Assembly (NCBI GenBank): GCA_002269645.1
Contig: NIVC01001703.1
Coordinates: 55,613 to 119,612, forward strand
Source of the DNA: Macrostomum lignano
Taxonomy: Eukaryota
Length of the DNA stretch: 64,000 bases
Direction of reading: 5' to 3'
A program made the translations under genes and the position numbers. Shown piece by piece: positions 5,476 to 56,445 of the stretch; within the stretch, counting starts at the first letter, position 1, and each line of letters starts with the position of its first letter. Below the pieces are notes generated by a model that saw only the letters and a program-made list of their open reading frames with translations, made no database searches and was not told the origin of the DNA.

Positions 5476-5982
5476 GTGTGCTTCTCCTGCCTGGAGAGCG
5501 AAGAGTACCGCCTGGCCCAGATCTGCGGCCTGAACATCATCATCCACGCGGATGAGCTGGAGGAGCTGATCAACTTCTACCAGACTCGGGGCCTGTTCAA
5601 TGAGCTCATCTCACTGTTCGAGGCCGGGCTGGGGCTCGACCGCGCCCACATGGGACTGTTCACGGAGCTGGCCATTCTGTACAGCAAGTACCGCACAGCC
5701 AAGCTCAAGGAGCACCTGGAGCTGTTCTGGTCCCGCATCAATATTCCCAAGGTGCTGCGAGCGGCCGAGCAGGCCCACCTGTGGGCTGAACTGGTCTTTT
5801 TGTACGACAAATACGAGGAGTTCGACAATGCCATACTCACTATGATGAAGCACCCGACTGAGGCTTGGCGCGAGTCCTTCTTTAAAGAGATGATCTCCAA
5901 GTGCGCCAATATTGAGATCTATTATAAGGCTATTAAATTCTATTTGGATTTCAAGCCTCTGCTGCTCAATGATTTGCTGCAG
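5476..5982 (+). CDS. CLTC: Clathrin heavy chain exon ([36 protein letters not shown]...LLLNDLLQ)
   Basis: ACACAG|GTG acceptor, CAG|GTGAGA donor, 169 codons, phase 0/0. Confidence 0.97.
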
Positions 5983-6024
5983 GTGAGATAATGCTTCATG
6001 TAGCCTTTTGTATCTGCTGTATGT

Positions 6025-6755: not shown

Positions 6756-6784
6756 AGCTTCAAATCAATTTTGTTCACCCCCAG

Positions 6785-7424
6785 GTGCTGATCCCCCGCC
6801 TGGACCACACCCGAGCTGTGAGCTTCTTCGCCAAGGAGGGCAAGGTGGCCATGGTGAAGCCCTACCTCAAAGCGGTGCAGCAGAACAACAACAAGCACAT
6901 CAACGAAGCTCTGAACAGTCTGTACATCGAAGAGGAAGACTACCAGAGCCTACGCGCCAGCATCGAGGCATTCAACAATTTCGACAACATCGGGCTGGCG
7001 CAGAAGTGCGAGAAGCACGAACTGCTGGAGTTCCGTCGGATTGCGGCGCTGCTGTACAAGGGCAACAACCGGTTCAGTCAGAGCATCGAGCTGTGCAAGC
7101 GCGACCGGCTGTACAAGGACGCCATGCAGTTCGCTGGCGAGTCGCGGGACTCCGAACTGGCCGCCGCCCTGCTGCAGTGGTTCCTGGATGAGAAGCTCAC
7201 CGAGTGCTTCAGCGCCTGTCTGTACCAGTGCTACGACCTGCTCAAACCGGACAGGGTGATGGAACTGGCCTGGCGGTACAACCTCATGGACTACACGATG
7301 CCCTACATGGTGCAGGTCATGGCCGAGTACCAGGCTCGGCTGGAGCGGCTCGAGCAGGCCGAGGCTGTGCGGGCTGAGAGCGACGAGAAAGCTAATAGCG
7401 ATGGCAACCCCATTGTGATGCAGA
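6785..7424 (+). CDS. CLTC: Clathrin heavy chain exon ([15 protein letters not shown]...[24 protein letters not shown]...PIVMQ), including the trimerization region
   Basis: CCCCAG|GTG acceptor, CAGA|GTGAGT donor (phase 1), 640 nt. Confidence 0.96.
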
Positions 7425-7444
7425 GTGAGTGCTGGCTGGTTTGG

Positions 7445-7645
7445 GGACAGACAGACAGGCAGGCAGACAGATAGACAGACAGGCAGGCGTGCAGACAGAC
7501 AGGCAGACAGACAGACAGACAGACAGACAGAGACAGACAGGCAGACACAGACAGACAGACAGACAGGCAGACAGACAGACAGACAGAGACAGACAGACAG
7601 GCAGACAGACAGACAGACAGACAGAGACAGACAAACAGACAGAGA
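7445..7645. repeat. (GACA)n microsatellite with variants, in the last clathrin intron
   Basis: Direct reading. Confidence 0.95.
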
Positions 7646-7684
7646 CAACAATAAATCCGCAGCAACTCGCCCGCCCACCCTCAG

Positions 7685-7827
7685 CCAACCCCATGCTGAT
7701 GCTGACCAGCGCTCCCCATCACTCGATGATGCCGCAGCAGCCGGGCTACCCGCCGCCGCCGCCGCCTCCCGCCGGCCCTTTCTACGGAGCCGGCAGCGGC
7801 CTGCCGCCGCAGGGGCATCACTTCTGA
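7685..7827 (+). CDS. CLTC: Clathrin heavy chain terminal exon ([25 protein letters not shown]...GHHF*)
   Basis: The CCCTCAG| acceptor at 7684 matches the phase-1 donor at 7424. It encodes an LMLT motif and a Pro/Gly/Tyr-rich tail, as in clathrin C-termini; TGA at 7825-7827. The six exons total 878 aa. Confidence 0.9.
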
Positions 7828-8894
7828 GCCGCCATCGATTATGAAAGTTCACGTTGAAGTCTTTGACTTACCAATCTATTATAGACCTAGATATATAAAC
7901 TTGAATGCAGGCGGTAAACAAACTTTAGTAAAAGGTAAGAAAAGTTTTGTTCAAATCCTGCGTTGCAAAATAAAACAAAAACAACTGCAGCAAAACTGTG
8001 ATTTCACAATTACACTTTACACCCTGTTGTTTTGGTTACCTCCGAGTATGTTTGTTGGCTATTATTGCCAATTATAAGTTAGCTTGTTGGTTCAAAAATA
8101 TATGATATTGTCTTTATTTGTTGTTTTTTTCCTTCAAAAATTTCTTTAAAGCAGTGTTCTGATTTCCGCTAAACACAACTTGCTCTGAGATGTTTCTAGG
8201 TTACTTAGTTAATTATTTATTCAGCTCCTTGTTGTACTTTTATTTTTAGCTATTCCGCTCATTTTGTCGGTTGTTTGAATTTATAGTACTGTCAAGCAAG
8301 TAGGCAAGTGAGCGTGTTTGCTTGTTATATATATTTCTATTTACGAAGAGATGTCGCAGCTGCTCCTAATGAATTGCATTGTTTTTCTAGCTTACACTTT
8401 TTATTTAAATAATAATTAAGTGATTTTTGTTATCTAACAATTAGTGTGTCTTTGTGTGTCAGCACTAGCAAATAAAATCAAAGTCTGTCGTACCGTCGCG
8501 ATTTTGGTTGCTTTTCATCAGCTGGTTAATGTAAACTGGAATCTGTAGTTATAAAGTTCTACCTTTGCTATTGTGTGTTTTATTATTGTAATTCAATTAT
8601 TACTATGATTATTATTCATCTGCTAGTGTCAATTTTGTCATCGAACTGTTTTGTCTTGTGTCTAATTAAAAAATAAAATTGTCAACCGCATATGCATGTC
8701 CGTAACTGCCACTCTTAATTGGTTCATCAGCAGTAGTACAATTTGAACTTTGTCACTCATATTTAATTGCTAAGCATAAAATTCTAAAAGTACTTATTGA
8801 TTTATTCAGTTTGCTTTAAACACTCAGCTAGTAAACTGGCTGCAATTCAAATGCTCTCGCACGGTGTGCACTCACTGATGTGTTCTTAATGTAG

Positions 8895-20391: not shown

Positions 20392-20439
20392 CTGGGTGAG
20401 CGAGTGCGTGCCTATCCGTGTGCGATCGCTTGAAAGAAA

Positions 20440-20995
20440 GGGAGCGAGGCGATAGCAGAGAGGGGGAAGAGGGCGAAGAGTGGGGAGAGAGGGGGAGAGA
20501 AGTGGGAGAGTGGACCGTGAGGAGAGAGGAGAGATGGGAGAGGGGAGAGGGGAGGGAGGGGAGAGGAGGAGAGGGGAGAGAGGGGAGATGGGAGAGAGGG
20601 GAGAGAGGAGAGATGGAAGAGAGGGCAGAGGAGGAGAGGGGTGAGAGGGGAGATGGGAGAGAGGGGAGAGGGAAGAGAGGGGAGAGAGGAGAGATGGAAG
20701 AGAGGGCAGAGGAGGAGAGGGAAGAGATGGGAGAGAGGAGAGAGGGAAGAGAGGGCAGAGGAGGAGAGGGGAGAGAGGGGAGATGGGAGAGAGGGGAGAG
20801 GGAAGAGATGGGGGAGAGGAAAGAGGGAAGAGAGGGCAGAGGAGGAGAGGGGAGAGAGGGGAGAGGGAAGAGATGGGGGAGAGGAAAGAGGGAAGAGAGG
20901 GCAGAGGAGGAGAGGGGAGAGAGGGGAGAGGGAAGAGATGGGAGAGGGAAGAGAGGGGAGAGGGAAGAGAGGGGAGAGTGGAGAGAGGGGAGTGG
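20440..20995. repeat. Purine-rich (GGAGA/GAGG) low-complexity minisatellite in an intron of the minus-strand gene
   Basis: Almost exclusively A/G; lies between the donor at 21055 and the acceptor at 20392. Confidence 0.9.
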
Positions 20996-21055
20996 TAGGA
21001 GGGTGTCGCAACAGATGGAGAATTTCGCCCAAGCCCTGCAGCCCCAGCAGCCCAC

Positions 21056-21526
21056 CTTGTACAAGTCGACCCCGCGGCCGCTCAGCCCTTCGTCACCGGT
21101 GGCGCCAGCCGCGAGCAGCCGGGCGCAGTGGCGCCTCTCCTGAGCCAGCTGGGTGAGCCGTGCCTCCAGCTTGGCATTGATGGATTTCAGCTCTCGGATG
21201 AAATTCTCATAGTGCCAGGCCAGCTCCGAAGCCGCGCTCGCCTTCTCCAGAGCCTCGGACAGCTGCTCCCGCAGTTGAGCAGTTTCAGCCGAGTCCGCTT
21301 CCGCTTCCCCTGGTTCAGATTGCACTTCCGGGTTTGCCTCCTCCTCCTCTTTCTCTTCTTCCTCTTCCCTGTAGTCCGTGAACTGTTTCTGAAGCTTGTA
21401 TTCCCCATCAGCGTCGCTTCCGGTTAACTGCAGCGTCAACTTCCGGTGCCGCTCCAGCTCCTCCATGGCTTTAGACATCGAGCTCTGCGATTGGGATGGG
21501 AGCTGATTGAAGTGGCGATTTGCGTG
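21056..21526 (-). CDS. Exon 2 of the coiled-coil/Cys-His protein (acidic coiled coil)
   Basis: TCTCAG| acceptor at 21527, AAG|GTGGGC donor at 21055, 157 codons, phase 0/0. Encodes MSKAMEELERHRKL...ELKSINAKLEARLTQLAQER. Confidence 0.78.
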
Positions 21527-23427: not shown

Positions 23428-23601
23428 GCTGTTGCAGAGAATTCAATGGCTGGAGCAGCTACCCACCGCATGATTGTCATTGAGCGCCTTTGTGAGAAAC
23501 AAGAATTGGCTCGAGATTTTTAGAGTTCTTCAAGTTGTAACTGTTTAAGCTGCGAACTGTACTGCTGAATTACGGTGGGGCCACCGGTGCGCTTGGCAGG
23601 T

Positions 23602-24182
<581 letters not shown>

Positions 24183-25686
24183 GCAGATCCATATAGCTGC
24201 CAGTCAGACCCACCGGCTATTTTACTTAATTTTAACTTACAGGCCTTTGTATTTTATATACAGTTTTCAAGTGATAAGTTGATATCGAATATGTACTCGT
24301 AAACAATTGCCGGAAAGAAAGAAAGTTAATTGAAGAAACATCAAGGGGTCAAGCAACAAACGAAATAGTTAAAAATTACTTTCGGGCATCATTATTTTTT
24401 CATGCCAAACAGCTGAAATAAAAGAGAAGTGAACATAATTTTCCCACTCCTTTTAAACTGATATTTATTCAAAAACTTCCTAAAATTACTAAACTGGAAA
24501 ATTTCTAGAATATTAGCTTTGCTGTGGATAAATAGATTGAGGGCTTTAGAGCATAATTTTATGCATTAGTCAGAAATCGACTTTACATTCACGATATTTT
24601 TCACGAGTTTAGCTGATTAGAAGTGTTAACGGACGATTTTTAAAAATGGAACGACTTTGCTTCTTTCCAGATCCAAAACGTTTTCAGGTTATCCAACAGT
24701 TGTTTCAGCTGTATTCATGCGATTTTGTTAGTTTGAATCACAGATTCGAAAATAACTAGATGGGCCACTCAGTCACTCAGTAAAACAACTTTCTACTTTT
24801 TTAATTCAGTAGCAAAGAAGAAAAAGTATCTATTTTTTAAAAAAGGCATCTGAATTGAAATTGAAATGACTTTTGTAAGTTTAGAAGCCCAAGCTTGCAG
24901 GCGTAAACAATTTGCTAATTGGTTCAGCAATAATGTACATTGGCCACTGAATGTACATGGCAGCTTTAGGCTGGAATTCCGAGAAAGGCAAGAAAAATTG
25001 GGGCGGGCGGATGGGGTAGTGTGGAAAAGCGCGGTTGGAGGGTTTAAGCTGGGGGGGGGGGTAAGAGCCAATAAATGAGCCTTGGCTTTCAAAATACATA
25101 AAGATGGTTCTGTTTGACTTGCTACTGAACTGAAATTAGTTTACACGCAAATGAGATGAGTGGCTCATCTAGTTATTCTATAGTATCTGTGGTGGTCTAT
25201 ATATGGTTTCATCGTTGGGCATTCTTGTCATTCGAATCGCCTCGTGACTCGTCGTCTGGGTCTCCTCGATTGTCCCCTCTACCGTCTTGACCGTCTTACT
25301 GCCGACCGCTTTGTCTTTGAACGCTGATCTGCCTAAAAATATCCAAGTGACGCAGATGCCTGCCCACTATAGTGTTCCTTGAGTTGTACTCGGTTGCCTT
25401 GAAGCGGAGAACGGAGCATGGTGCTTTGTGTTCGATTTGGACCAGTGCAAATTGTATTTAGACACCTATTGCGCAATCGCTAGTATCCAGGAGTTTTCTA
25501 TTCAAGCATATAGTTTGAAGCTTGCATTTACCTGCTAATATATAATTAGCTACCGTAAATCATGTCAGCCAGGTGCGATGGCATAGACATCTGCATTCTG
25601 ATGACTGCAGCGCTTGTTAAAAGCTTTTCTCCCCTAACGTTTCTACGCTCGTATTCCATTTTTGCTACTAACTAGGAATTGGGTGC

Positions 25687-27018
25687 TCAAAAGAGTGAAT
25701 AGAGGTCATTTCCTTTCCCAATAATAAACAAGCGACCCCCGACCTCTTGTGCACTCACGTTACTCATCCTGATTCTTGCGCAAAGGGAGCCGGAAGCCAA
25801 AGCCAGAAGCATTTGCTGCTTCGTCACTTTGAAGCCGCACAGGTGCTTCTCAATCAAAGACACAACCGGCCCGATTTCATTAACCAGCTTCGGGCAGTCG
25901 ACTATTTGGCCGTTTGCTGCTGTGACACCCAGGCAGCGAGTCTGCACAAGCTTGTCCACAGCCAGCGACTTGGCCGAAGCCACCGTCAGGGAGTTGTCGT
26001 CGCCCTCCGGACACCGAATATAGCCCAGAGATGCACCTGCCGCCTCCTCCAGCTCCGGTGTGACAAGCTGACCCATTTTGAAGAGAGCAGCGGCTCTGAG
26101 ATAGGCTTTGCCGACCTGAGCGCTGTCTGGAATCTGGCGCTCGACGTCCGACAAAAGTTGAGTCAATCTGCCAGACCGAGACCCGACCGGAGCTTCACTC
26201 CTGATGCTTAACCAAAGCTCAGTTGCCGTCTGCATTGTGGAAACGTATTCTGTCAAGCTGAAATCACTGCATTCCAGTAACTCTACTGCTAGAAGGTAGT
26301 AAGAGAGAAACGAAAGGAGAATCACGTTGACCTCAAATTTAGGCAGAGACTCTCTGAACGGTTTCAGGTCGCTGAGCAGGTTGTCTGCTGACTGACGGAC
26401 GGCTGCTACAATCCTCGATTTTGAGTCGTGCTCTCGCTTGAAGAACACTCTGGCGTCACCCAAGAAAAAAATGTCTCATGCAGGCGTCCTCGGAGTCTGA
26501 GCTCTCCATCATTGCCACGAGAATGTCTAACGACTGCTGCACCAGCGCCAGCAGGTTGTCCGACTTCCAGTCCTTCGCCGGTGTCTCGTCGAGCATGTAG
26601 AACAGCAAGTTTTTGCCAACGTACGTCTTCAGACCGCTCACTCTGCTGCCGATCACCCTCTTGATGAGGAACTTGACGAGGATGAAGAACTGGCCCTGCA
26701 CGGTGGTGAGATGCTGCATGACGGACCTTTCCAGCAGGGTTGTGCTCACTCGAAGTCGGCTGCCCTCTAGACCGGGCGGCGCACTGCTGACGGCGTGGCA
26801 CCTTGGCGTCTCGCCCAGCACCTCTTCTCTGAGCGCCCTCATGATGTCATCGGACATGCAAGTCCTGTATCCGGGCCGCAGCAGCTCGATGTGAGGGTAG
26901 CCGCAGCAGGAATGCGCCAAAATCAGGTCTATTGCAGGCAACATCCGCGACACTTCGAATGCGATATTCGGCGCTAAAACTGCATTTTCAGGACACATGT
27001 AGATGATAAATTTCGTTT
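25687..27018 (-). CDS. Mab-21/cGAS-like nucleotidyltransferase (cGLR), main exon; one extra T in a T7 run (26471-26465) breaks the frame (pseudogene or consensus error)
   Basis: Motifs IDLILA..C.GYP, HAV, RVSTTLLERSVM, LVKFLIK, GLKTYVGKNLLFYMLDE, W.SDNL and RHFF match the Mab-21 core and C-terminal helical bundle pattern. Removing one T joins ORF 26456-26998 to ORF 25687-26463 (MRHFFLG-DARVFF). Acceptor TACAG at 27019. Confidence 0.82.
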
Positions 27019-27193: not shown

Positions 27194-27336
27194 TTATTTA
27201 CCTGAAACTGGCAACAGTCCTATTTTTCGAGTGCTTTGCTCAAAACGCGGGCTTAATATGCAAAGTTTCCTTGCTGAGAGTGCATTAGCATATTCAGGGC
27301 CCCTGTTCGCTCTGATCAGCATTGGCCAACTTCAAA

Positions 27337-27563
<227 letters not shown>

Positions 27564-28119
27564 CCCTCTTAGTATGTCTTGTACACCTGCTAGGTAAATG
27601 TTTTTGAATAAAATCAGTTTTTCTACCGAAAAAGTAATATTACTCAGTAGTCTTCTGCGCACCAACGCGTTCAAATCGAATCAACGTTAGTGAGCTAATT
27701 TTCGTATTCTGCTGCCAAGATGCGTTTAAATTGAAACATGGTGCTTCATCTAAGTACTGATATATGCAAAGGCCACATAACGACTTTAGCGGCATGAAAG
27801 TTCTACCAGCATAATATTGCTAATTCCCATCAGTAGCAGCTGGCCCCAGTGCTCAGATAGCTCAGGCAGATGAGAATTGGGAATAGACCAGGAATGGGGA
27901 GAAAAACTGGATTTGATGGATGAGACAGCAGGATGTGCAGGCGGTGGAAAGGAAACCAGGTAGAGGAAATAAGAAGGTGGGAATGTGCGCTGAATCAATG
28001 AAGTGTGGATTCACACATGGCTCCTGTGCTACTGGAACTCCTTGAGAGGAAATATTGATGCAGAAATATTGGAGAGAAGCTATTTTAGGCAGAGAAGCGA
28101 AGAGATTGCGGGAGCAGGG

Positions 28120-30640: not shown

Positions 30641-32744
30641 GTGCACAGCTGGGGCTGCTACGTGATGGTTTTAAAAACGCTTTTGTTAGTGCACTTACAT
30701 TGCACTTACCCCAGCAAAAAAGTCAATTAAGTCTAGAGAGTTTTCGTTAAGCAAAAATAATTTCAAATATCAAACGCCATTAAATTATCGCCGTTTAGCA
30801 ATCAAATAATTTTTAATTACACGTAACGATATAACTAAAGCATCATTGTTTGAATTACCGCCAATCTTTACTTCCGGAATTAAGAATGTCGTGCGGATCA
30901 TTTTATTGAGCTGACCTGCCCAGAATGATCAGTTGGCTTGTAAAGTTTTAGCTATAAACGAAAGACACTAAACATGTGTATTCAGGGAATTAAAAAATGT
31001 TAAAACTTATTGTCTACGAGCCTGTAGTCGTAATAAAATTTATATCGCAGGCGAAAGCCTAATTAATATAACTGACTCTTTGAGTTATAACTTGACGCAA
31101 GTTAATCTACGTTATATAAAGAAGCCTTATATGCCACGCGATGTGCATAGCTATGTAATTTGTCCTAGCTGATCCCCGTAATAAGAATTGTTAAAATTCA
31201 AGCCTAGAATTTCTGCCAGTTGGGAAACATTTATAGCTATTCAATATATTACAGATTTTATTGCTCACGAGTTATGGTAAAAAGAAAAGTAACAATTTCA
31301 ATCTTTTTTATTTAAATTTCTTCGTTTCAAATAAATCATAAGTAGTAAATATAATTACGAGTACAGATATACTGTCATAAATATATCAAATATCAAGCTA
31401 AAAAGATTTGTCGTAAGAGCTCAAAATGTTTCTATTTTAAATTTATACCATTTGTAAACAAATGCTTGACTATAAAAACTATTTTAATTTGAAACAGAGT
31501 TATTCCCACGTAACCTGTAATAAATAAAGTATCTAGCACATAATGCGACACGTGTTTAATATCTTAATTTTCTTGTATTCTACCGGATTTGTTTATAATA
31601 GCAAGTTGAAACGTGCTGTTAAAACAAATTGTTCTAATTTAAATTTGAAATCCTGTTAACTAATAGTCCCCAATATAATGTACTGTTTAATACGAAAACG
31701 TCTACCTACGTTCATTGTATGAGTCAAAGCAGGGTAGAAAAAACTTGCTCTCCTAATTCCCCGATAATCTCCAACCCTTATTTAGAGAGTAGCTAGTTTA
31801 TGGCAATGGCAAATATGCAAAATATATTACTTTTATGTGAAAAATACTTGCTGAACTATTGTCTGTCTGCAGAAGATTCATGCAATCAGAAATTTGTTAG
31901 AAATTTTATAATTATTGCTCCTCTCAGGTACAATACATCAAAACGTACAGTGAGTGTCGTATTACATAAATACATGTATGTTGCATACCATGCCACATGT
32001 TTTGCGGGGACTATAGCAATTTCCGCTCAGTATAATAAACGCATGTATATAGATAACCAACCAGTTATAATTGTGTTAATTCTTGTAGAATATTCTCCCC
32101 AAATAGGTCTTTTATTTGCACCTGTCTGCAATCTGCATGGGTATAATCGGTTGGTACAGTCGGAGTAAAATACCTGCATTAACGACCTAGATCTACATGC
32201 GCAGTTTTCCTGAAAAAAATTTAATCTAAAAAAGTTTAGCGATCAGAGTCAAGAAGAGCTGCATGCGCACAGCAGGTCAGCCAGCTTATCTCCGATAAAC
32301 TCAAGCCGAAAACCATGGTCAACTCCAAAGGGCCGCCCCGCTCAATTTGCGACTTAAGTGGAGCAGACATAATCTGAGAAATCCAAGCTTAGCTTCTCTT
32401 GAATTGCTGCATCAGTGCACGGATGAGCACAGTTGGGAATGCCGGGCCTGCAGCATCTCCCCGCCGGGTCCCCCTGGGGCGGCGCGCGGTGAGGATCGAA
32501 ATGTGACCGGGCTGATTGATGACTCGGGTTGCTTAGCAGAGGCTTTAGCGAGAAGCAGCTGTGCGAACCAGTTGGCTGCGATCTCTGCTGAGATTTGTTG
32601 CGAGGTATTGATCGAATTTTTAGATATTGTAGCTTTTGCGAGGTTTGCTACTTTTAGTAGGAGTATCGCATATTCAGTGGTAAATTCACAGATAATGCAT
32701 CCAATTTTCATAGAAATTAAAATGGGTTTCTGTGTCGAATGAGC

Positions 32745-33895
32745 GCAGTGAGTATCAGACAGTGTCAAATGGGTACAGTTAGTATCAGACAGTGTCAAAT
32801 GGGTACAGTTAGTGTCAGACAGTGTCAGATGGGTACAGTTAGTGTCAGACAGTGTCAGATGGGTACAGTTAGTGTCAGACAGTGTCAAATGGGTGCAGCG
32901 AGTGTCAGACAGTGTCAAATGGGTACAGTTAGTGTCAGACAGTGTCAAATGGGTACAGTTAGTGTCAGACAGTGTCAAATGGGTACAGTTAGTGTCAGAC
33001 AGTGTCAGATGGGTACAGTTAGTGTCAGACAGTGTCAAATGGGTGCAGCGAGTGTCAGACAGTGTCAAATGGGTACAGCTAGTGTCAGACAGTGTCAAAT
33101 GGGTACAGTTAGTGTCAGACAGTGTCAAATGGATGCAGCGAGTGTCAGACAGTGTCAGATGGGTGCAGCGAGTGTCAGACAGTGTCAAATGGGTACAGTT
33201 AGTGTCAGACAGTGTCAAATGGGTACAGTTAGTGTCAGACAGTGTCAAATGGATGCAGCGAGTGTCAGACAGTGTCAGATGGGTGCAGCGAGTGTCAGAC
33301 AGTGTCAAATGGGTACAGTTAGTGTCAAACAGTGTCAAATGGGTACAGTTAGTGTCAGACAGTGTCAGATGGGTGCAGCGAGTGTCAGACAGTGTCAAAT
33401 GGGTACAGTTAGTGTCAGACAGTGTCAAATGGTACAGTTAGTGTCAGACAGTGTCAGATGTGTGCAGCGAGTGTCAGACAGTGTCAAATGGGTGCAGCGA
33501 GTGTCAGACAGTGTCAGATGGGTGCAGCGAGTGTCAGACAGTGTCAAATGGGTACAGTTAGTGTCAGACAGTGTCAAATGGGTACAGTTAGTGTCAGACA
33601 GTGTCAGATGGGTACAGTGAGTGTCAGACAGTGTCAAATGGGTACAGTTAGTGTCAGACAGTGTCAAATGGGTACAGTTAGTGTCAGACAGTGTCAAATG
33701 GGTACAGTTAGTGTCAGACAGTGTCAAATGGGTACAGTGAGTGTCAGACAGTGTCAAATGGGTACAGACAGTTAGTGTCAGACAGTGTCAAATGGGTACA
33801 GTTAGTGTCAGACAGTGTCAAATGGGTACAGTGAGTGTCAGACAGTGTCAAATGGGTACAGACAGTTAGTGTCAGACAGTGTCAAATGGGTACAG
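32745..33895. repeat. 30-bp minisatellite (AGTGTCAGACAGTGTCAAATGGGTACAGTT)n, ~38 copies
   Basis: Period 30; one unit at ~33431 lacks a G. Confidence 0.97.
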
Positions 33896-34254
33896 ATTCG
33901 GTCAGAGGATGCGAAATGGGCTCCGAGAGGGTCAGATAGATGAGGGTACAAAGTGGGTATCTAGAATTTCAGCAGGTGCAGTTTCACCAGGCAGGCATAT
34001 GGCAAATTACAGTACTATAAAATAATAATAACACACACAATAATATTATCTAGGAAATGAACAACACTCCGAAAAGCGGAACCCGTGCACCGGAGTTGAA
34101 AACCAGGTCAGCCTTGTCCTCAGCCTGGCATCAGATCTGGGATAAATTATGAAAATTATGAGTCGCAATTATTTTCTATCCAATAATTGATTCTCAAAAA
34201 TTGCTCTCGGCCGGAAGCGAGCCTGTGGGTTCTTTTCTGCAATTTTTGCTATTT

Positions 34255-34645
34255 TAGAGATTTGACAGACTTGGGATAGAACTGGGGAGATTTTTCAGAC
34301 CTGGGGTAGAACTGGGGAGATTTGACAGACTTGGGGTAGAACTGGGAAGATTTTACTGAATTGGGGTAGAACTGGGGAGATTTGACAGACTTGGGGTAGA
34401 ACTGGGGAGATTTGACAGACTTGGGGTAGAACTGGGGAGATTTGACAGACTTGGGGTAGAACTGGGGAGATTTGACAGACTTGGGGTAGAACTGGGGAGA
34501 TTTGACAGACTTGGGGTAGAACTGGGGAGATTTGACAGACTTGGGATAGAACTGGGGAGATTTGACAGAGTTGGGATAGAACTGGGGAGATTTGACAGAC
34601 TTAGGGTAGAACTGGGGAGATTTTACAGACTTGGGGTAGAACTTT
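34255..34645. repeat. 30-bp minisatellite (GAGATTTGACAGACTTGGGGTAGAACTGGG)n, ~13 copies
   Basis: Period 30, highly homogeneous. Confidence 0.96.
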
Positions 34646-35152
34646 AAAGCAAACACAGATGCCATACTAAATACTAATAATTATTTGAGAACAGTGCAAG
34701 CGGGCCTGCTCAAAGGAAATCCTATAATTGGTTTATTCTGCATCGAAGAAAAAATGAAATTGTTTTTTATATAGATAAATGCCTGGCAAACGGCTCCCCG
34801 CTGCAGCTATAAAATCATTACGGTCGTGCGCATATAAGGCCATTAACTTCTTAGCCTATAGTTTCATATTGATATGCACACATGCATAACAGCATCAGCA
34901 CAGCCAGCCCCAGTCACGAGCTGCTCAGTCATGCGATGCCGACGACTCCCTGTAAGATTGCAGAGGCGGAGCTGCCATGCTGCCTATAGGTAGGGCAAAG
35001 TGATGGGGAGAGCAGGGCGGAGGGAGGCTGTAGGGAAGGAAGCACCTCGGACTGGGAAGGGAAGGCGGCTCAGTATTGATAAATCAGATGGGGCAGTTCA
35101 GCAGCCCGGGGGTTCCGCAGTCCTGGGATTCTCACAGCAGCAGCGCCCTGGC

Positions 35153-37730: not shown

Positions 37731-38199
37731 AACTACCTGTCTTGGATTCGGTATTCTTGGCATAAACAGTAATAACCAAAACTCGACACATTCATTTTAA
37801 AATACAAAGTTTCAGCAGTTTAATTTATTTATTTAAAATCTTTTAGCATTCGGTCACGTGCAGAACAGCTGATCAATTATTAAAATCAATTATTTAATTC
37901 TCTCTAATGGAGTGGCTCGCAGGTTGTCAAATATTCGAGCAGCTCAAGCGACAGTTGCTTAATAGAAACGAAAGCGACTGCTCGATCGATAAGTGCCTTG
38001 TCTGGGCAGGGACGGCGGTGGGAAATGGCTCCGAATTTGAAATGCGACATTTTTGCTAATTGCAGGGAAGTGTAAAGAGTGCTCTCGAGTGCCGCCTGTA
38101 CTCGATACCGGTGTTCTAACCTTTAACAAGGGCGAGAGGGACGCAATGGGCAATGTATGGATTTAGTTAGGTGTAATGATTTAGTCATATAGGCAAACA

Positions 38200-38520
<321 letters not shown>

Positions 38521-39361
38521 AAGCAGGAATCAAATCAGGCAGGCAGGCACCTGTGAGCAGGGGAGAATTGATTGAGCAGGCGGGCAGCCAAGGCCGAGAG
38601 CCACATGTCGCGAACTCAAGCGCTGCAGGCAACCCTCTCGATTTCGCACGCCCGCCTCAGCTCGCCTGCATTCCCGAAACCTTCTCAGCCTTTTTATTTC
38701 CCTTTTTCTTTCCCCTCGCCACCCCCCCCCCCTGGTCCCTTTAGTCCTTCGGCAGCTCGAATTCCCCGAGGGAAAATGAGAGGCAGATTCTCTGCTGCTG
38801 TTTTGGAGACACGGTGCCCCTGAGGGGGGGCTGCCCGCCCAGCTGCTGCAGAGATGAGGAAGCGATGGGTCAGCAGAACTGCCGGCCTACACGAGCCTCT
38901 CGAGAGTAATTGCGACACCTGCCTCAAAGAGACACCTAGGGGGTGGGGATCTCTCAACCTTAATTAGAAATTGTCCACACGCGAAGCTGAGCTGGAGTTT
39001 GCGAAACAGGAAAAACAGGCTGCCATTGCTGCTGCTGGAGAGGAAAAAATTAAAGAGCTGACAGGACGGGAGATTTCAACACGCGAATCCCTGGGAGAGA
39101 AAGAGGGGAGCTTGGGGACCTTCGCACCCGGATTTGTCAATGAATGATGAATGAGGCAGACTGCGAACTGTCGCTCATCCACTGCTCGGGTTTACCTCTC
39201 CCCGGGTTTGACGAATGAGAGATGAATAAATTTATTTGATTTTCCTGCTTGGCAAGACTGACAGAAGCAGATCGCTTTGATTTATTGTTAAATGCATGTG
39301 AGAGTAGCTGCATCGGGTCGCGGGCTTGCGAAAGATATATGGAGAGAAAAGAGAAGAGGGA

Positions 39362-45001: not shown

Positions 45002-45732
45002 CGGAAACGGTCATACGCGAAGGTGACAACGGCGACAATTTCTATGTGATCCGGCGTGGTCACTTCGTTGTGACGGCAAAACAAGCCGATGGCACCGCAG
45101 AGGTGATCCGCCAGTTGACCGATCGAACGCAGCATGTTGGAGAAGCCGCTCATGCTCGCAACTACTTCGGCGAGCTCGCGTTGCTCTACAATCGGCCGAG
45201 ATCGGCCAGCGTGCTCGAAGCAGGCGGCGACGGGCAGGGCGGCAGCCTGTGGGTGCTGGACGGCTCCGCGTTCCGTCGGCTGGTGATTCGGGCCGGGCGT
45301 CAGCGCCGACTCGAGCGTCTCCGGATGCTTCGTCGGGTCCCCGCTCTGCGGGATGGATTGTCGACCGACGAGTTGGAGCGACTGGCTGACGCGCTGACCT
45401 TGCGAGAGTTCTCCCTCGGAGAGGTGGTCTGTTCTAGAGGCGACGAAGCCGATGGAATGTACTTTGTGCTTAGTGGAGGTGCCAGGGTAGTTGGCGATGG
45501 CGAAGTGAATTTAAGAACGCTCGGGCCTGGAGATTACTTCGGAGAGGCAGCATTGATTGACAAAAAGCCTCGCTCTGCCACGGTTGTTGCTGTGACCAGC
45601 AGCGATGGCGAAAGAAATGGCGAAGCCGAGGCTATGGCTACGATGGCTTTCCTAGATCGGTCAGCTTTTGAACGGCTGCTGGGTCCCTGTGTGGAGCTCA
45701 TGCGCCGGGGAATGGAGAAGTACACAGACTGA
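45002..45732 (+). CDS. PRKAR2: PKA regulatory subunit, exon 3: two cyclic-nucleotide-binding domains
   Basis: CTAAG| acceptor (phase 1). Motifs ETVIREGDNGDNFYVI, FGELALLYNRPRSAS, FGEAALIDKKPRSAT and FERLLGPC...KY*. Full protein ~374 aa. Confidence 0.9.
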
Positions 45733-46519
45733 TGAGCAACTGTTAGAAATCACAAGTTTAAGTTTGATGAACGCATAGAATAACGGGTTTTCCAGTAAAG
45801 CGGGCGGACAGACTTTACAGAGCTACTGATTCCACGTAGTTAGATAAAAGCCCCATCTACACTCAACTGTGTAAAAGACTACCAAGTAGATTTTAATGAA
45901 CTTTGGGATGGATAGTTCTGTCCGATTTGGTATAGTACGGGCTGAGGGCGTTTTATTGAGTTTGAATTGTCTCAGAGCAGCCCCTTTGGCCCTTTTTTGA
46001 ATTAACTGTTGAGTTCTGTAGCTGTTCTCCTTCGTGCATCTTATAATTTTGCGTCATACAAACTGTGCAGTTCGAAATATAAGCATTAAATTCGAAAAAA
46101 ACTACGCTCGTACGAGCGTACTTCAATCCTGTTGCGTGCTGCTAACAACATTTTTCGATAGCAGCCTTTTTTCAAACCAACTAGACGAGTTAAATATTTG
46201 AAGCAGTAAAAGTTTTTAGTGTCGTTCTATCTGAATGAAGTTTGCTAGTTTGAGTTATGCACTCGGAGAGATAAGCAGCGATATTCTCAATCGCCACTTT
46301 CGCTCTGTACTCATCAGCTTGTCACGAAAAGCGCATTAGATCTTGTTACAGCTACAGCTATTAAACTTAATGATGTATTTCCGGTTGCAAGTCGATGAGC
46401 GTGTATTAAAAACAAGCATTGAAACCCTGTGCAATGGCCAGATAAAAGTTTCCAGTGCAATTCCTATTATTTAAACACTCATAGGAACTATAGCTTTGCA
46501 AAGTGAAAGACTTACAGCC

Positions 46520-46628
46520 ATGCAGCGTATTAGCTTTTCATTCGCTATGGCAACCGTAATCCTGCTAATGGCCTGTTGCTATGGCATCGCCATGGCGGCT
46601 AGAAACAATCGGAATTGCGACAACATTA
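46520..46628 (+). CDS. Signal-peptide exon of a secreted thermonuclease (MQRISFSFAMATVILLMACCYGIAMA-ARNNRNCDNI)
   Basis: GCC-ATG context; basic n-region, hydrophobic h-region and A-x-A cleavage motif. The A|GTGAGT donor at 46629 is phase 1, matching the acceptor at 50160. Confidence 0.72.
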
Positions 46629-48914
46629 GTGAGTATAGTGCTTCGATGTATTTTCTCATTGAAACTTCACAATATAGAACTGTGGATAGATGTTCACTAT
46701 GGCTTTTAAGACCCGAAAAATAACTGGGACTAAACTAGATCCAAGGAAGATACCGCGTTGGTATCAGGACGTAGCATTTTTAAAAATGCTACAAAACTAT
46801 TAGAAGGCCCGCTAGTTGGCATTGCAGCTAAACTTTAAATGATCTTAACTCTGGATCTGTTGCACTTAAAATGAGTTTTTCGCCAGGTTTTTTTAACTAT
46901 TGTAGATATAGGGCAATATTAAATGTAATGTGACGAAGTTAGATCGATTGTGAACGATGTCGATGCAGCGTGACGCGCTGAGCGCTGAATCTATTCTTAA
47001 CATTAAAGATAGCAACGAGCGAAGCGTATTAATTGCTAGCGTATAGCGTAGCAATGAGACGGTGTGAAGGAAGGAGATCGAGAGGGAGCAAGCGCGCGTA
47101 AAATAGATTCGAATACATTTTATATACTGCTAGGTATTTCTATGAATTATACGGTATAACAAAAAATGCGTTAACGCTAAATAAGAAAGTAAAATTTAAG
47201 TATAATGTAGAAATAATGTAGATTATGAATATTATGCTGTATGATACAAAATAAGAAACAAAGGTGAAATAAAGAAAGTGACAGCGTCACACTTGCATTA
47301 CTCTATGAAATAATTTTTTGTCACATTGTATTTGTTTTCATGCGCCGGTCAAAGTTAATAAATACCGTGCACCCGTATTCAAAATATTTCGCTTTTTGCC
47401 CGGCCTGTTAGGCTTTCTGTTCTCCGGGGTCTTAATATATCCGGGGGACACCGCAAAGCAAAATTATTGTCGCTTTGCGATAACCTACCCTGGATAATCC
47501 AAGGCGCAACAAAACCGGGCTTTGAAATATCCTGGGTTTTAAATTGTCCGGGGTGAATAAAGATTGGTGGTCAAGTTATTTACCTGATAAAGCGCATGTG
47601 AATGGGGCAGGACATCATTTCGAGAGAATGGGGCTGACTCAGAGGCCAGGGAAGGGCCCTGACTGCACCTTAGAGAGAGGAGGGGCAGATGAGGTGCAGT
47701 CTAAGAATAAATCGATAATGGACTGGCGTCACATTGCTAGCACTACAAGCGCACGTGCGATGAAGATCAGTGTACGAGCTAATAGCCCACAAAGGAAAGT
47801 GTTGTGCAAATTACGAGTATATTACACGTAACTTTTTATTTCTTGTCGAAGTTCTACGTTTAGGAAAATTTATCTCTCGATGGCTAAAGTATCGCTGAAC
47901 CAAGTGTTTTTTGTGTTTTTAACGAGTATGTTGAGCTGCCGGAAAATTCCAGTACGAAAGAGAGAGATAATCTGAAACGAAAAATCAGAGAAAAGAGCAA
48001 AAACTTCACGCTTCATTCAGCGGATGGCCTGTTTTTGATTGAACGAATTACATGTAGATTGGTGAATCAAGTAACAGTTTTTTGGCTGACAATGTATAGT
48101 ATCAATACCTTTAATTTTGCTTCTGTTTGGAGTGTGTGAAATGCAAAATAGTGATTGAAAATACACTCGGTTAAATAAGCATGACGCAGATGTTTGCCAA
48201 TTGAAAAAGTAGCAGAAAGTTTTTTCTTACTTTGCTATTCCTAACCCCGGATATCAGTAGCCGGATGTCCTAAAGCAAACCTCGTCTCCGCAGACTGACC
48301 CCTCTCTTTCAATCTACAGTCGGATGTCCGAAGACAACTTCCCCTTCTTGTGATCTCCGGGCCGGATAGCAGAGTCAGTGCCGTAGGATGTCCGGGAGAG
48401 ACATCTCAAAGTGCCCAGACAATGCAAAGCAATTCAAGATATCCGGGTAGGAGAAAACAAAGCAGGCTTTTTGCTTGGCAGTATCCGGGCGGATATCGTA
48501 AGTGCGTTCGGATATCCGGGCCAGACAAAAAACCCCGGAAAGTCTAAAGTGTAACACCGGCCCCCGCTCGTGCTCGCTCGGCGGATCGATCGGCCCATTA
48601 CAAGTAGCATTCAGAATACTGAGCCGATTGAACCTTAGTGGGGTGTTCGTATATTGAATTGTAAGATTGAGTTGAAGTGTGAACCGATATGTCCGTTGAT
48701 AGGGCGCAGGAGGCCCGCGACTATTCTGTAATTTCATGGCTAACTTTGGAAGGAATAATTAAGACTAGCTCTGTAACTTTTGTGCACTTAAGTATTAATA
48801 TTTTAATTGCACCGATCTAAATCTGTAATTCCATATAATAATAAGCAATTTTTTAGTAGATAAATGTGATAGTTAACTTTTCCAACCTTCAATTCATATA
48901 TACTTGATTAAGTG

Positions 48915-49540
48915 CCCTTCTCAGTCAATTTATTTAAAGCTTTGATTGTTGCCAGCGAAACTATATATGTACCTTTCCGACAATTTTATATGGGAGACAA
49001 GTATTGGGGAGGAATCGCAATTTAAGATATCAAAGAGTACACATTTTGGCATCTATTCAAACCATCTCAGGGTACGTCCAATCGACTGGTGGAAACAGTA
49101 GTAGCCTTGGGCCATTATGTTGTATCGCTAACACAGGGATAAGTTAATTGGGATAATTGTCACCGTCAGGGTTGTCTATAAGGGTTGTCTAAAATTCAGA
49201 AATTTTAAGAGGTCTGAGACGTTTAGCCGATATAATAGTAATTTGTATCAAAACCTTAGTCATCGCTAGCTAAGAGTTCGGATACTCGTAGCCCTTTGTG
49301 AGGTAACAGACAGTGAGTCATCGTGAACCATGGCAGGACATTTTGCCGCATTAGTTAGAGTTCGAGTGAAAACAAATTGCCTTTTTATTATCGGGGTTTG
49401 TTTGAATGATAAGTGAATTGTGGGACCGAATTAATTTGAATTCATTTCTTAGAAACTCTGGAGTTAGTGCAGGGATCGTTATACTCACTGCAGTAGGAAT
49501 AGACGCCTTTTACATTTGGTAACAATGGTGGGATTTGAAA
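48915..49540 (+). mobile_element. LTR-like remnant ending TTACA followed by a PBS-like TGGT...GGTGGGATTTGAA, inside the nuclease intron
   Basis: 48915-49150 is similar to 52285-52500 (TCTCAGTCAATTTA, ACCATCTCAGGGTAC, AGTA..AGCCTT.GG.C.ATTAT). The CA-TT-TGGT junction is at 49513-49520. Confidence 0.5.
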
Positions 49541-50160
49541 TTCCTATTCTCCTACCGAGTTAAAAACAATTGTACAATTGTTCTCTTTTGGATGACGTAA
49601 TTAGCTAGTTCAGTCTTATATCTACATGTAGGAATGACAGGGGATGTACAGTAAGTAACTGCTATACGCAATATTTCTGGCAGTCGAAAAGAAATAAATA
49701 AGCTGCGATGAATTTCGACTATGGTTTCCGTTGAACTAGCTACCGTTTTCTTGACAAAGTAGCAAACCAGAAAAGCATACAGTTTGGAAGCTTTAAAAAT
49801 TGTAATCTGTTCAGTGCTGAATAGGCTGCAAAAAGCTATATAGTCTGCACAAAATCAGCGGGGCAATATTTCCGAAATCTTGGCACACCGGTGCAACACA
49901 TGGACTCCCAATATTTAAAGTATTTATTTTGCTGTTCAAACGAACAGTAGAAGTCAAATAAAAACTTTGTACGAGCTACAATATCATTGCTTTATATTTT
50001 GTATTTAAACTCGCCTTTAGAACCTCTATAATATCATAAAAAAACTTGTGAAATAGGAAAAGTTTGCCCAATACAACGGTGAATTCGTTTAGTGAACCTT
50101 GACTAGATCATAGCTAACTTGCCTTGTTTTAACTTGTTTTTTTTACTAATTTATTGGCAG

Positions 50161-50603
50161 GAGCTGATGATGAAAATGGAGAGAGCGTCATCTGCGGCAG
50201 GGTGACATTCGTGAACGATGGTGACACGCTGCGCCTCTCTCCGGACGGCCGCAGAAATTCGGCGTCTCTGCGCATCCGCCTGCTAGAGATTGACGCGCCG
50301 GAACTGAACCAACGGCACGGCGCTGAGGCGCGCGACGCCCTGCGATACATGGCGCCAACCGGCTCGCGCGTCTGCATCTTAATAGACAACGAGGACATCT
50401 ACGGCAGACTGCTGGGCCGAGTTTGCCGCGGCGGCGCCGACTTGAATCTGCGCCTGTTGGAGGATGGGCACGTCTGGTGCTATCGGGGCCGCTGTCGCTC
50501 GGCCTACAGGACGGCAGAATTGCAGGCGCGTTCTAGTAGGCACGGACTTTGGTCGGATCCGACAGCGCAGGCACCCTGGCTGTTCAGAAAGCAGAAAGGA
50601 TAG
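50161..50603 (+). CDS. Staphylococcal-nuclease (SNase/thermonuclease) domain, single-domain bacterial/LCL3 type, terminal exon
   Basis: Catalytic and Ca-binding motifs NDGDT, IRLLEIDAPE and DIYGR, plus LN..L...G..W.Y and C-terminal AR....GLW......PW.FR. Strong acceptor: poly-T tract, ACTAAT branch point, GGCAG at 50160. Confidence 0.92.
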
Positions 50604-51349
50604 GCTGGCAAGCATGACGCTGGTGTGGTCAAACTAATACGATGTACTATTAAGAGTAAGATAGTCAAAGAAGAACAATGAGAACGGACTGACTGCAAAG
50701 CTGCCGGAATTAAAAGCTTCTTTATATTGCAAACTAATTAAAAGCACTGAATTAATACATCGTTATGAAAGATAACACCGGATCTATAAAGTTTGCTGGC
50801 GCAATTATACTATTAAAAATTATCCACCTCTTCACATTACCTAAAAAATGCACAAAGAATTTAATGATATACGATTAGACTAGATGCTACTATTAGAATA
50901 CCCATACGAAATAACACCAGTTTTTTGTTCCTGCAAGCTTAATACGAGCTAAAGTAAGGAGTCCTCAGGCCACCATGCCCAGTTCTGAGCTAACCGTCCC
51001 GCGTCCGAGTAAGAAGATAACAGAGTCAGGCAGGACATCGCGCACCTGTTAATATAAAGTTTAGAAAGTTTTCCAACGACCGGCTGGGACTTTTTGCCCA
51101 ACTGGGCATCAATTTAATTATATTTACTAATTCACTATGTGTAAGGTGGTGTGATCGATACGTAGGGGCACGAAACAAGCGTAGCACAAAAAAACAAAAA
51201 GCGTTCAAAATCGGAAATCAAATTCAAACACGATTAGATTGAAAATAATACCATGCAAAAAGAGTGTAAAATTGTTAATTCCCTAGAAATACATTTTACG
51301 AGTACAAAGGGGCGCTTTCGCATGATAGCATCCTCCTACGTGCTATCAA

Positions 51350-52070
51350 CGAGCGGTGTTGCAAAGGTTTCCGGACTGTGTTCACGAGCAGTGCTACTCG
51401 CAAACAGAGAGGGAGTCGCTGGCCATCAAATTCGGTTGCCTCAAATTCCACCACTACCTTAGCCGCTGCCCAAAATTCAAGGTTATACCACCGGATTATA
51501 CCACAAGCCGCTGGTCAGCATGCACAGCCCCACCGCGGATCGAGCGCCTGGCACTTGGCTGCAGTACAAGCCAGGGGCAGACAACTCAGCAGATTTCTGG
51601 GACCGATCGAAGGTCATATGCTGCTAGTGTGCACAAACTACTTTTTACGCTTTTCACTGGTAGATAATTTCGGGGCGAAAGCAGCAGCCCAGGTCATCCG
51701 AAGCCTCCGAAAGTTGTTCAGGACGCCAGTCAGTTAAGATCACCAACGACAACGGCCCGCTGTTCTTGTCCGCAGAGTTCAACGCCTACTTGCGCAGTTA
51801 GGGCATCCAACATCATCAGAATGCACCGCTGCATCCCCAACCCAATGGACTCACTCGTGCAGCGATGCATCCGAGGCCTCACTAAGACACTCAAAGGGCA
51901 GCGACTGGCGGGCGGCACTGGACAACTAACTGGCGAAAACCGCGCCCAACAAAGGACATGGCCCAAGAGGCCTCCAACCACCAGATCACCGAAGGAAACC
52001 TCGTCCTCCGCCAGCTCACTAACCGCAGCAAGACCCAACCCCTTTTTCGAGGCCTCGCCTAAACATTATT
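51350..52070 (+). mobile_element. Degenerate Ty3/Gypsy pol remnant (RNase H and integrase fragments) with stops and frameshifts
   Basis: YSQTERESLAIKFGCLKFHHYL and PPRIER (RNase H region); GHMLLVCTNYFLRF, VIRSLRKLF..P and NDNGPLFLSAEF....GIQH...P.HPQPNG (integrase core). Confidence 0.85.
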
Positions 52071-52084
52071 AGCTCTAACAGACT

Positions 52085-54900: not shown

Positions 54901-56445
54901 CTGACCAGCTCCGAAACAATTGACGTTGTAGTCCGATCCGTGACACTGTAAATTCCTGATGCAACGGTGAGACGATGTTCAAGGATGATATGCACAACTA
55001 CACTACAACGATATTTTAACCAGGTCTGAAACAGTTGACGTTGTCGTCGGATCCGTAACATAGCGAATTCCTGATGCAACGGTGAAATGCTGTTTAAGGC
55101 TGATATGCAGGACTACACTTCAGAGAAAGATATTGTAACCAGATCAGAATTAATTTAAGTTGTCGGATCCGTGACAATGCAGATTCCTAGTGCAACGGTG
55201 AGATTTTCAAGGCTGATTTGCAGGACTACACTCCATGCAGAGAAAGATATTGTAACCAGATCTGAAACAGTTGACGTTGATGCAGTGGTCAGATCCGTGA
55301 CAGGGCATATTCCTAATGCAACGGTGAGATGTTCGATCAAGACTGATACACAGGACTATATTCCAGAGAAGAATGTTGTAACTAGATCTGAAACAGTTGA
55401 CGTTGTGGTCGGATCCGTGACATTGCAAATTTCTGATGCAACAGTGAGACGATGTTCAAGGATGATATGCACAACTACACTACAACGATATTTTAACCAG
55501 GTCTGAAACAGTTGACGTTGTCGTCGGATCCGTAACATAGCGAATTCCTGATGCAACGGTGAAATGCTGTTTAAGGCTGATATGCAGGACTACACTTCAG
55601 AGAAAGATATTGTAACCAGATCAGAATTAATTTAAGTTGTCGGATCCGTGACAATGCAGATTCCTAGTGCAACGGTGAGATTTTCAAGGCTGATTTGCAG
55701 GACTACACTCCATGCAGAGAAAGATATTGTAACCAGATCTGAAACAGTTGACGTTGATGCAGTGGTCAGATCCGTGACAGGGCATATTCCTAATGCAACG
55801 GTAAGATGTTCGATCAAGACTGATACACAGGACTATATTCCAGAGAAGGATGTCGTAACTAGATCTGAAACAGTTGACGTTGTGGTCGGATCCGTGACAT
55901 TGCAAATTTCTGATGCAACGGTGAGACGATGTTCAAGGATGATATGCACAACTACACTACAACGATATTTTAACCAGGTCTGAAACAGTTGACGTTGTCG
56001 TCGGATCCGTAACATAGCGAATTCCTGATGCAACGGTGAAATGCTGTTTAAGGCTGATATGCAGGACTACACTTCAGAGAAAGATATTGTAACCAGATCA
56101 GAATTAATTTAAGTTGTCGGATCCGTGACAATGCAGATTCCTAGTGCAACGGTGAGATTTTCAAGGCTGATTTGCAGGACTACACTCCATGCAGAGAAAG
56201 ATATTGTAACCAGATCTGAAACAGTTGACGTTGATGCAGTGGTCAGATCCGTGACAGGGCATATTCCTAATGCAACGGTGAGATGTTCGATCAAGACTGA
56301 TACACAGGACTATATTCCAGAGAAGGATGTTGTAACTAGATCTGAAACAGTTGACGTTGTGGTCGGATCCGTGACATTGCAAATTTCTGATGCAATGGTG
56401 AGATGTTCAAGGGTGATATGCAGGACTAGACTCCAGAGAAGGATT
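54901..56445. repeat. Higher-order tandem repeat: 477-bp unit made of four diverged ~115-126-bp monomers, three near-identical copies plus flanking monomer
   Basis: Identical ORFs at 55171/55648/56125 are spaced 477 bp apart. Monomers start at ~55024, 55141, 55260 and 55386 and share GAAACAGTTGACGTT, GGATCCGTGAC and TGCAACGGTGAGA. Confidence 0.95.

Follow-up and report, generated by a model that had tools for sequence, protein, structure and literature searches.

The archetype of the SNase family (PF00565) is Nuc of Staphylococcus aureus, a secreted, Ca2+-dependent nuclease. In bacteria, thermonucleases and YncB-like SNases occur in Proteobacteria, Planctomycetota, Leptospiraceae, and others, and many of their genes are located on conjugative plasmids, on elements resembling integrative and conjugative elements (ICE-like elements), and in phages or prophages. 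Here we describe a gene of this kind from the free-living flatworm Macrostomum lignano, located at positions 46520–50603 on the forward strand of a 64,000-nucleotide stretch of contig NIVC01001703.1 (the whole stretch is referred to below as the window, and gene coordinates are counted from its first letter). We consider it likely that this is a functional M. lignano gene, that it encodes a secreted SNase, and that it is a member of a three-group, Macrostomum-specific family derived from a single, horizontally acquired thermonuclease of bacterial type.

Comparison with described nucleases

With the bacterial thermonucleases, the flatworm protein has in common one SNase domain of ~135 amino acids behind an N-terminal export signal (predicted for the flatworm protein), 35–50% identity across the entire domain with no insertions or deletions (indels), identical catalytic and Ca2+-binding residues, and the motifs V.DGD[TS]L, IRL.GIDAPE..Q, D.YGR, G.AW.Y, and GLW...P..PW.[WF]R. 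The flatworm genes differ from them by a phase-1 intron between leader and domain, by six conserved cysteines, and by their eukaryotic signals and host codon composition. Compared to S. aureus Nuc, the predicted flatworm fold superposes with a template modeling (TM) score of 0.78 and six key residues are common to both, yet identity is only ~26–30%, T41 and K84 of Nuc correspond to Ala and Ile in the flatworm protein, and Nuc has neither the C-terminal PW.FR tail nor the flatworm protein's cysteines.

Two eukaryotic systems are also relevant. Tudor-SN (SND1) likewise contains SNase-like OB-fold domains, but it is an intracellular protein with four to five SN domains and a Tudor domain, whereas the flatworm product has a single domain and a predicted signal peptide; similarity to PDB-verified human SND1 amounts to 25–27 BLAST bits (E ~1e-3 in a 14-sequence comparison). 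The plant enzymes CAN1 and CAN2 are, like the flatworm protein, eukaryotic stand-alone SNase nucleases with conserved catalytic residues, but they are plasma-membrane proteins that bear N-myristoylation and palmitoylation, and ~55 inserted amino acids interrupt their SNase domain (PMC3505149). In contrast, the flatworm protein starts with M-Q (no Gly2), its leader is hydrophobic, and its domain is continuous. As a phenomenon, the case resembles other transfers of secreted enzymes from bacteria to animals (nematodes, rotifers, arthropods, and springtails), in which an acquired intron, a secretion signal, host-like composition, and lineage-specific duplication are likewise found. It differs from them in enzyme class, an SNase nuclease taking the place of a carbohydrate-active enzyme, and in its host, a free-living flatworm.

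Gene structure and predicted secretion

The gene consists of two exons on the forward strand. Exon 1 (46520–46628) begins with the ATG at 46520 and holds the start codon, the predicted signal peptide, and a linker with Cys33; its 109 nt make up 36 codons plus one base, so that the donor (...ACATTA/GTGAGT, 46628/46629) is in phase 1. The spliceosomal intron (46629–50160, 3,532 nt, 39% GC) has a GTGAGT donor, a TACTAAT branch-point-like motif, a poly-T tract, and a CAG acceptor, reading TTGTTTTTTTTACTAATTTATTGGCAG up to position 50160. Exon 2 (50161–50603) contains the complete SNase domain, with DGDT at 50217–50228, IDAPE at 50289–50303, and YGR at 50400–50408, and ends with the stop codon TAG at 50601–50603. 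Because the closest in-frame stop 5' of exon 2 lies inside the intron (50130) and no ATG precedes the domain, exon 2 requires an upstream partner exon. Splicing gives a coding sequence (CDS) of 552 nt and a protein of 183 amino acids.

A first-pass annotation of this DNA, made from the letters alone, had proposed that a phase-1 splice joins an upstream signal-peptide exon to position 50161 and yields a 183-aa product. This is exactly the junction in the RNA-seq-derived GenBank annotation, and the product is identical to PAA64899.1 ("hypothetical protein BOX15_Mlig002410g1", gene Mlig002410.g1) of M. lignano, whose exon 1 is the exon 1 given above and whose annotated span of 4,084 nt corresponds to 46520–50603. 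In UniProt, the product of Mlig002410.g1 is named "TNase-like domain-containing protein". The gene model is therefore public already, merely as a hypothetical protein. The M. lignano annotation was not made ab initio; it combines a genome-guided transcriptome (StringTie/TACO) with a second, mapped transcriptome assembled de novo and with transcript ends that were determined by experiment (PMC5730564), which lends the annotated junction RNA support of an indirect kind.

The leader is best read as a cleavable signal peptide comprising residues 1–26, with a predicted mature start at Ala27. The protein begins with MQRISF, followed by a hydrophobic stretch covering approximately residues 4–26 (Kyte-Doolittle 19-residue mean up to 2.0), which AlphaFold models as a single helix from residue 6 to 28. 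An A-M-A at positions −3/−1 precedes a polar RNNRN stretch, and cleavage is predicted at AMA/A. A different reading of the same residues is that they form an uncleaved type II signal anchor, in which case the SNase domain would be tethered at the cell surface or in a lumen as a membrane-anchored ecto-nuclease. Membrane-anchored nucleases are found elsewhere in the family, S. aureus Nuc2 and fungal LCL3 being examples, and both the hydrophobicity of the leader and its predicted helix would suit an anchor; however, A-M-A followed by RNNRN is a classical signal-peptidase site. We therefore regard a type II form with its catalytic domain outside as less likely than a soluble secreted form, and overall as an unlikely account of the protein.

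The mature chain of the soluble form would carry six cysteines (C33, C48, C108, C125, C143, and C148), the first of them in the short linker. Bacterial homologues have on average 1.2 cysteines per domain, and 57 out of 106 have none, so the cysteine enrichment over Cys-poor bacterial enzymes that the first-pass annotation had pointed out is real, and it is specific to this lineage. In the secretory pathway, the six residues may pair into three disulfides; judged by where they lie in the SNase fold, plausible predicted pairs are C33–C48, C108–C125, and C143–C148.

Relatives and probable horizontal transfer

HMMER, run exhaustively against 1.84 billion representative proteins, gave 15,440 matches at E ≤ 0.001, of which the best 150 were listed. 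Every non-Macrostomum match that was checked by name or genomic context (approximately 20 of the best 150) was bacterial, phage, or metagenomic, and M. lignano was the sole named animal. Two word-indexed searches of a collection that includes UniRef and NCBI nr gave a similar picture. The first returned bacterial and metagenomic relatives only, with at most 44% identity, and missed the Macrostomum paralogues; among the top 120 matches of either search, there were no names of non-Macrostomum eukaryotes, including fungi. Named relatives comprise Neisseria leonii, Methylomonas plasmids, Hyphomicrobiaceae, and IMG entries labeled "YncB/micrococcal nuclease". The gene neighborhoods of two relatives (P0182 and P0325) are bacterial, with OsmC, YicC, and a component of a resistance-nodulation-division (RND) efflux system.

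Identity to bacterial and phage proteins is 42–50% over the whole domain, without indels. The closest non-Macrostomum protein (P0154; 50% identity in the HMMER scan, ~45% by BLASTP) is encoded on a phage-like contig that carries, on a single strand, DNA polymerase A, AAA, and numerous ORFans, and another relative (P0324) is encoded on a prophage-like contig with ERF recombinase, PDDEXK, and holin genes. The loci of the two closest non-Macrostomum proteins, both phage-like, lie at 8001–8390 (L090) and 5001–5465 (L092) of their own sequences, and the contig with DNA polymerase A also has a radical-SAM gene.

Across 185,579 species-representative genomes (GTDB), relatives with 35–43% identity were found in many phyla, for example in Neisseriaceae, Leptospiraceae, Planctomycetota, Nitrospira, and Bacteroidota, among others. 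In addition, homologues are present on at least 5,000 plasmid records (3,588 of them conjugative) and on 89 IMG/VR viral contigs; a phage reference collection gave 4 matches only, with at most 38% identity. Because homologues sit on plasmids and viral contigs and are spread across many phyla, this thermonuclease subfamily is highly mobile among bacteria. The GTDB scan gave no clear sister, the neighbor-joining (NJ) tree described below gave no specific donor clade, the location of the nearest proteins on phage-like or prophage-like contigs offers weak support for such a source, and a specific donor cannot be named.

For the comparison with Tudor-SN, a human SND1 sequence was used only as a probe to obtain the true PDB sequences (4qmg_A and 3bdl_A). 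The best bacterial or phage protein (P0324) scored 108 BLAST bits, compared to 25–27 for SN1–SN4 of human SND1. This gives an hU of ~81, and the alien-index calculation that the first-pass annotation had suggested (phmmer) gives ~56. In established practice, the usual thresholds for transfer are hU ≥ 30 and an alien index above 45, and both values lie beyond them. The earlier claims of a bacterial affinity and of a protein unlike the multidomain Tudor-SN thus agree with what the searches returned: checked matches outside Macrostomum that are all bacterial, phage, or metagenomic, and a single domain scoring 27 bits against human SND1 and ~108 against the best bacterial or phage protein. Judged from these sequence comparisons, horizontal transfer appears well supported.

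Vertical descent would offer another explanation: a stand-alone SNase of the LCL3/CAN kind, ancient in eukaryotes, would have been lost in nearly all other animals and would survive here as a relic, its bacterial appearance stemming from a short, conserved domain. Stand-alone SNases do occur in plants and fungi (PMC3505149), they are not among the sequences of the NJ tree, and the deep nodes of that tree are poorly supported. Yet such a relic is difficult to reconcile with the 42–50% identity to bacterial and phage proteins along the entire domain, with the want of any eukaryote name outside Macrostomum both in the top 120 of either word-indexed search and among the 20 checked of the best 150, or with a score of merely 27 bits for human SND1. 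The 55-aa insert and the N-myristoylation of CAN are also absent from the flatworm protein. We consider vertical descent improbable.

A paralogue family with a shared intron

The paralogue search proposed in the first-pass annotation revealed two further, divergent groups in M. lignano. Group A comprises Mlig002410 and Mlig018861 (the window gene; representative P0122), group B comprises Mlig022653 g2–g4 (representative P0142, 200 aa), and group C comprises Mlig008456 and Mlig013652 (representatives P0143 and P0294). Groups B and C are each 40–46% identical to the window protein and 48% identical to each other. In the exhaustive HMMER scan, they are the best non-self matches, with ~127–129 bits compared to at most 106 for the best single-domain bacterial protein. 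Neither the window nor the flanks of the paralogues contain extra SNase copies. One group B copy (Mlig022653.g1, P0320) runs into unrelated sequence after GLG and may be frameshifted, decaying, or misassembled.

Groups B and C have one intron each, in phase 1, with a GTGAGT donor, and positioned as in the window gene. Throughout the family, the position is defined by the N-terminal cysteine, three residues, and the split codon, after which the domain starts with [IL]CG[RS]V; the introns of the paralogues measure 734 nt (L004/L005, 6001–7337) and 3,319 nt (L006, 6001–9967). The five cysteines of the domain are invariant across all Macrostomum copies, and cysteine is present at the same columns in 0–9 of 106 bacterial homologues. 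No other protein among the 416 collected has more than two of these five family cysteines. Since the position and phase of the intron and the derived cysteine pattern are common to all three groups, the family argues for one ancestral gene, apparently already "eukaryotised", that was acquired long ago and then duplicated.

The leader exon may have arisen by either of two routes. In bacterial homologues, an export signal is located immediately ahead of the domain as well. Exon 1 of group B and exon 1 of group C are clearly alike (GRKI..[RK]QAK..V[ND]C[TA]T), and that of group A is more diverged. It is possible that an intron was inserted into a continuous open reading frame (ORF), or that a signal-peptide exon of the host was captured.

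A number of points weigh against a secreted nuclease family of single, horizontal origin. In the NJ tree of 113 sequences, B and C group together with 95% bootstrap, but bootstrap support for a clade of all three Macrostomum groups is just 30%, so that a single origin is argued from the intron and cysteine characters. The same tree was built without fungal LCL3, plant CAN, or protist SNases. Human SND1 is the sole metazoan comparator behind both hU and the alien index, and the matches checked by name or context are ~20 of the best 150. The searches gave no homologues from other animals, flatworms included, in a collection that apparently lacks transcriptomes of other Macrostomum species. The Mlig gene identifiers were found neither in the supplements of two M. 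lignano papers nor in full text. Finally, the hydrophobic N-terminal stretch of ~22 residues has a length that fits a signal anchor too.

Active site, fold, and predicted activity

The first-pass annotation had taken exon 2 to be a stand-alone, catalytically complete SNase domain, and profile and structure comparisons point the same way. The match to PF00565 covers 107 of 107 profile positions (E = 3.1e-14; 53.8 bits, with a gathering cut-off of 21). In the alignment with S. aureus nuclease, D21, R35, D40, E43, Y85, and R87 correspond to D58, R76, D81, E84, Y117, and R119 of the flatworm protein, so that all Ca2+-binding and catalytic residues are kept. Residue 41 of the S. aureus enzyme, which contributes a backbone ligand to Ca2+, corresponds to A82, and alanine is found there in 96 of 106 bacterial homologues. 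An AlphaFold2 model has a predicted local distance difference test (pLDDT) score of 89.4, and by Foldseek it matches variants of S. aureus nuclease in the PDB (E ~6e-11; TM score 0.78 to 4j1m, for a predicted model with an OB-fold beta-barrel and three helices); the SNase fold is thus predicted with high confidence. The protein falls short of the equivalog cut-offs of two NCBIfam models, EcnA (NF047969; 35.2 vs. 180 bits) and NucI (NF047694; 18.8 vs. 250 bits). From its residues and its leader, the protein is predicted to be an extracellular, Ca2+-dependent endo- and exonuclease acting on DNA and RNA.

A transcribed gene need not encode an active enzyme, and the transfer could be decaying, or the domain could have been re-used for binding as in Tudor-SN. 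The apparent frameshift at the C-terminus of P0320 in group B would be in line with such a loss of activity. On the other hand, although identity between the paralogue groups is only 40–48%, each of the three has retained all its Ca2+-binding and catalytic residues, and in the three copies of the window gene the ORFs and splice sites are intact and the differences are mostly synonymous. Loss of nuclease activity is, in our view, very unlikely.

Host genome context and copies

The region 36520–60603 of the window matches NIVC01001703.1 base for base, and the window holds host genes. A clathrin heavy chain gene is represented by four ORF segments at 1203–7474 (+), which match the Pfam Clathrin repeat with E-values from 1e-31 to 1e-36 and are exons with introns between them. 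An ORF at 45046–45732 (+; 66% GC) with a cNMP-binding domain (PF00027, E = 1e-25) lies on the same strand as the nuclease gene and stops ~790 nt before the nuclease ATG. Two further syntenic copies of the nuclease gene, Mlig018861.g1 and Mlig002410.g2, are located on contigs of 354 and 702 kb, so that three contigs of 120–700 kb bear the gene with conserved flanks, and over ~24 kb the flanks and intron of the three genomic copies are 96–99% identical. Redundancy and hidden polyploidy of the M. lignano assembly are known (PMC5730564) and fit these extra copies.

The most different pair of copies shows five synonymous and two non-synonymous changes in the CDS, and no indels. Between copies, the intron has 0.9–2.3% substitutions and 84–126 gap columns, with ~2.2% and 126 in the most different pair. 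None of the three copies of the window gene has a broken ORF or splice site. Because CDS changes are mostly synonymous and the exons are free of indels, with many gaps in the intron, these comparisons point to purifying selection between copies, the counts being small.

Base composition was considered as a sign of foreign origin and set aside. Exon 2 has 62% GC and its flanks 33–40%, but host exons are alike: GC at third codon positions (GC3) is 0.685 in the nuclease CDS, 0.74–0.87 in clathrin, and 0.63 in the cNMP gene. The GC-rich exon is therefore not a foreign signal; its GC and GC3 are those of the host exons in the window. The first-pass annotation had cited the spliceosomal intron against contamination, and the clathrin heavy chain and cNMP-binding genes supply an animal context. 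An assembly artefact, or bacterial contamination chimerically fused to animal DNA, might be suspected given that M. lignano cultures hold bacteria and diatoms and that the exon is far richer in GC than its flanks, but this is effectively refuted because host genes of the same GC and GC3 share the window and two near-identical syntenic copies lie on other contigs (three independent contigs of 120–700 kb with the same gene and flanks), to which are added a canonical spliceosomal intron that splits the coding sequence and two more paralogue groups with the same intron.

Proposed origin and function

The reading of a domesticated, horizontally acquired nuclease can be set out as follows. The source would be a bacterium or bacterial mobile DNA, either a phage or a plasmid. 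In the ancestral copy, a phase-1 intron would have come to lie between a signal-peptide exon and the nuclease exon. Six cysteines would then have been acquired, which probably pair as three disulfides fit for the secretory pathway, and the gene would have drifted to the codon composition of the host before duplication gave rise to three lineages. Its product would consist of a cleavable signal peptide, a short linker containing a cysteine, and one SNase domain, and would act outside the cell, most probably in the gut lumen or in surface secretions, in nutrient scavenging or the clearance of extracellular DNA.

A more specific version, which we offer tentatively and with confidence somewhat short of even, is that a nuclease of a phage or conjugative plasmid was captured, was given a signal-peptide exon and a new three-disulfide scaffold, and diversified into three paralogue lineages of extracellular nucleases, used to feed on the DNA of microbes and diatoms or for surface or mucosal defense. 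The physiological role is the weakest step. In the gut lumen, the enzyme may digest or scavenge nucleic acids, or it may clear extracellular DNA at body surfaces; these roles are favored because the animal eats diatoms among bacteria and because three paralogue lineages have been retained.

Both the protein family and the phenomenon are known; the flatworm case and a family of secreted, stand-alone SNases in an animal appear to be undescribed. Our literature search found no paper on these Mlig gene identifiers or on a Macrostomum thermonuclease. Well-documented functional transfers from bacteria to animals are few, and none was found described for flatworms; a 2026 compendium of metazoan horizontal gene transfer deals with neither flatworms nor nucleases in its main text (PMC13342648). 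If the proposed reading is true, these genes would be the first functional family of bacterial origin to be described from a free-living flatworm and, among animals, the first family of secreted, stand-alone SNases, as far as the searched literature shows.

The internal evidence is unusually clean: all three groups have their intron at one position, hundreds of bacterial relatives lack the cysteine pattern, and the active site is intact across the family. M. lignano is amenable to RNA interference and transgenesis, which makes the role of the gene directly testable, and candidate roles include digestion of environmental DNA, clearance of biofilms or extracellular traps, and reproduction. Given that the closest relatives are on phages and plasmids, one may ask whether animals acquire genes preferentially from mobile-element DNA. 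In addition, a disulfide-stabilized SNase variant, as predicted here, might serve as a robust nuclease.

Other features of the window

Several sequence features surround the nuclease gene. A TATA-like motif (TATTTAA, 46468–46474, +) 52 nt 5' of the ATG is a candidate core promoter, and ATTAAA at 50709–50714 (+), 106 nt past the stop, is a candidate polyadenylation signal with more copies at 50737 and 50812; both are matches to a consensus or motif only. M. lignano has polycistronic precursors that are resolved by spliced-leader (SL) trans-splicing, and an AG is found at 46516–46517, 2 nt ahead of the nuclease ATG. A scan of the 64-kb window against Rfam gave no matches, and no tandem repeats overlap the nuclease gene.

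On the 3' side of the gene, a GC-rich island at 51356–52072 contains overlapping, broken ORFs, one of them with ERESLAIKFGCLKFHHYL, which we take to resemble the RNase H/reverse transcriptase region of long terminal repeat (LTR) retrotransposons. The island is probably a degraded retroelement. Further downstream, a tandem repeat at 54913–56422 has a 477-bp unit in 3.2 copies (98% matches, 115-bp sub-period) and is present in both other copies of the region too. Arrays with short periods are located at 7425–7852, 20400–21150, 23575–24302, 27300–27570, 32412–33620, 34249–34665, and 38123–38632. Such arrays (for example of the GTCT/CAGA type, or with units of 30–33 nt) give rise to long, spurious ORFs in several frames and on both strands. 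Finally, an ORF at 26456–26998 on the reverse strand has a weak match to the Mab-21 C-terminal domain (E = 3e-4, under the gathering score) and may be a Mab-21-like exon.

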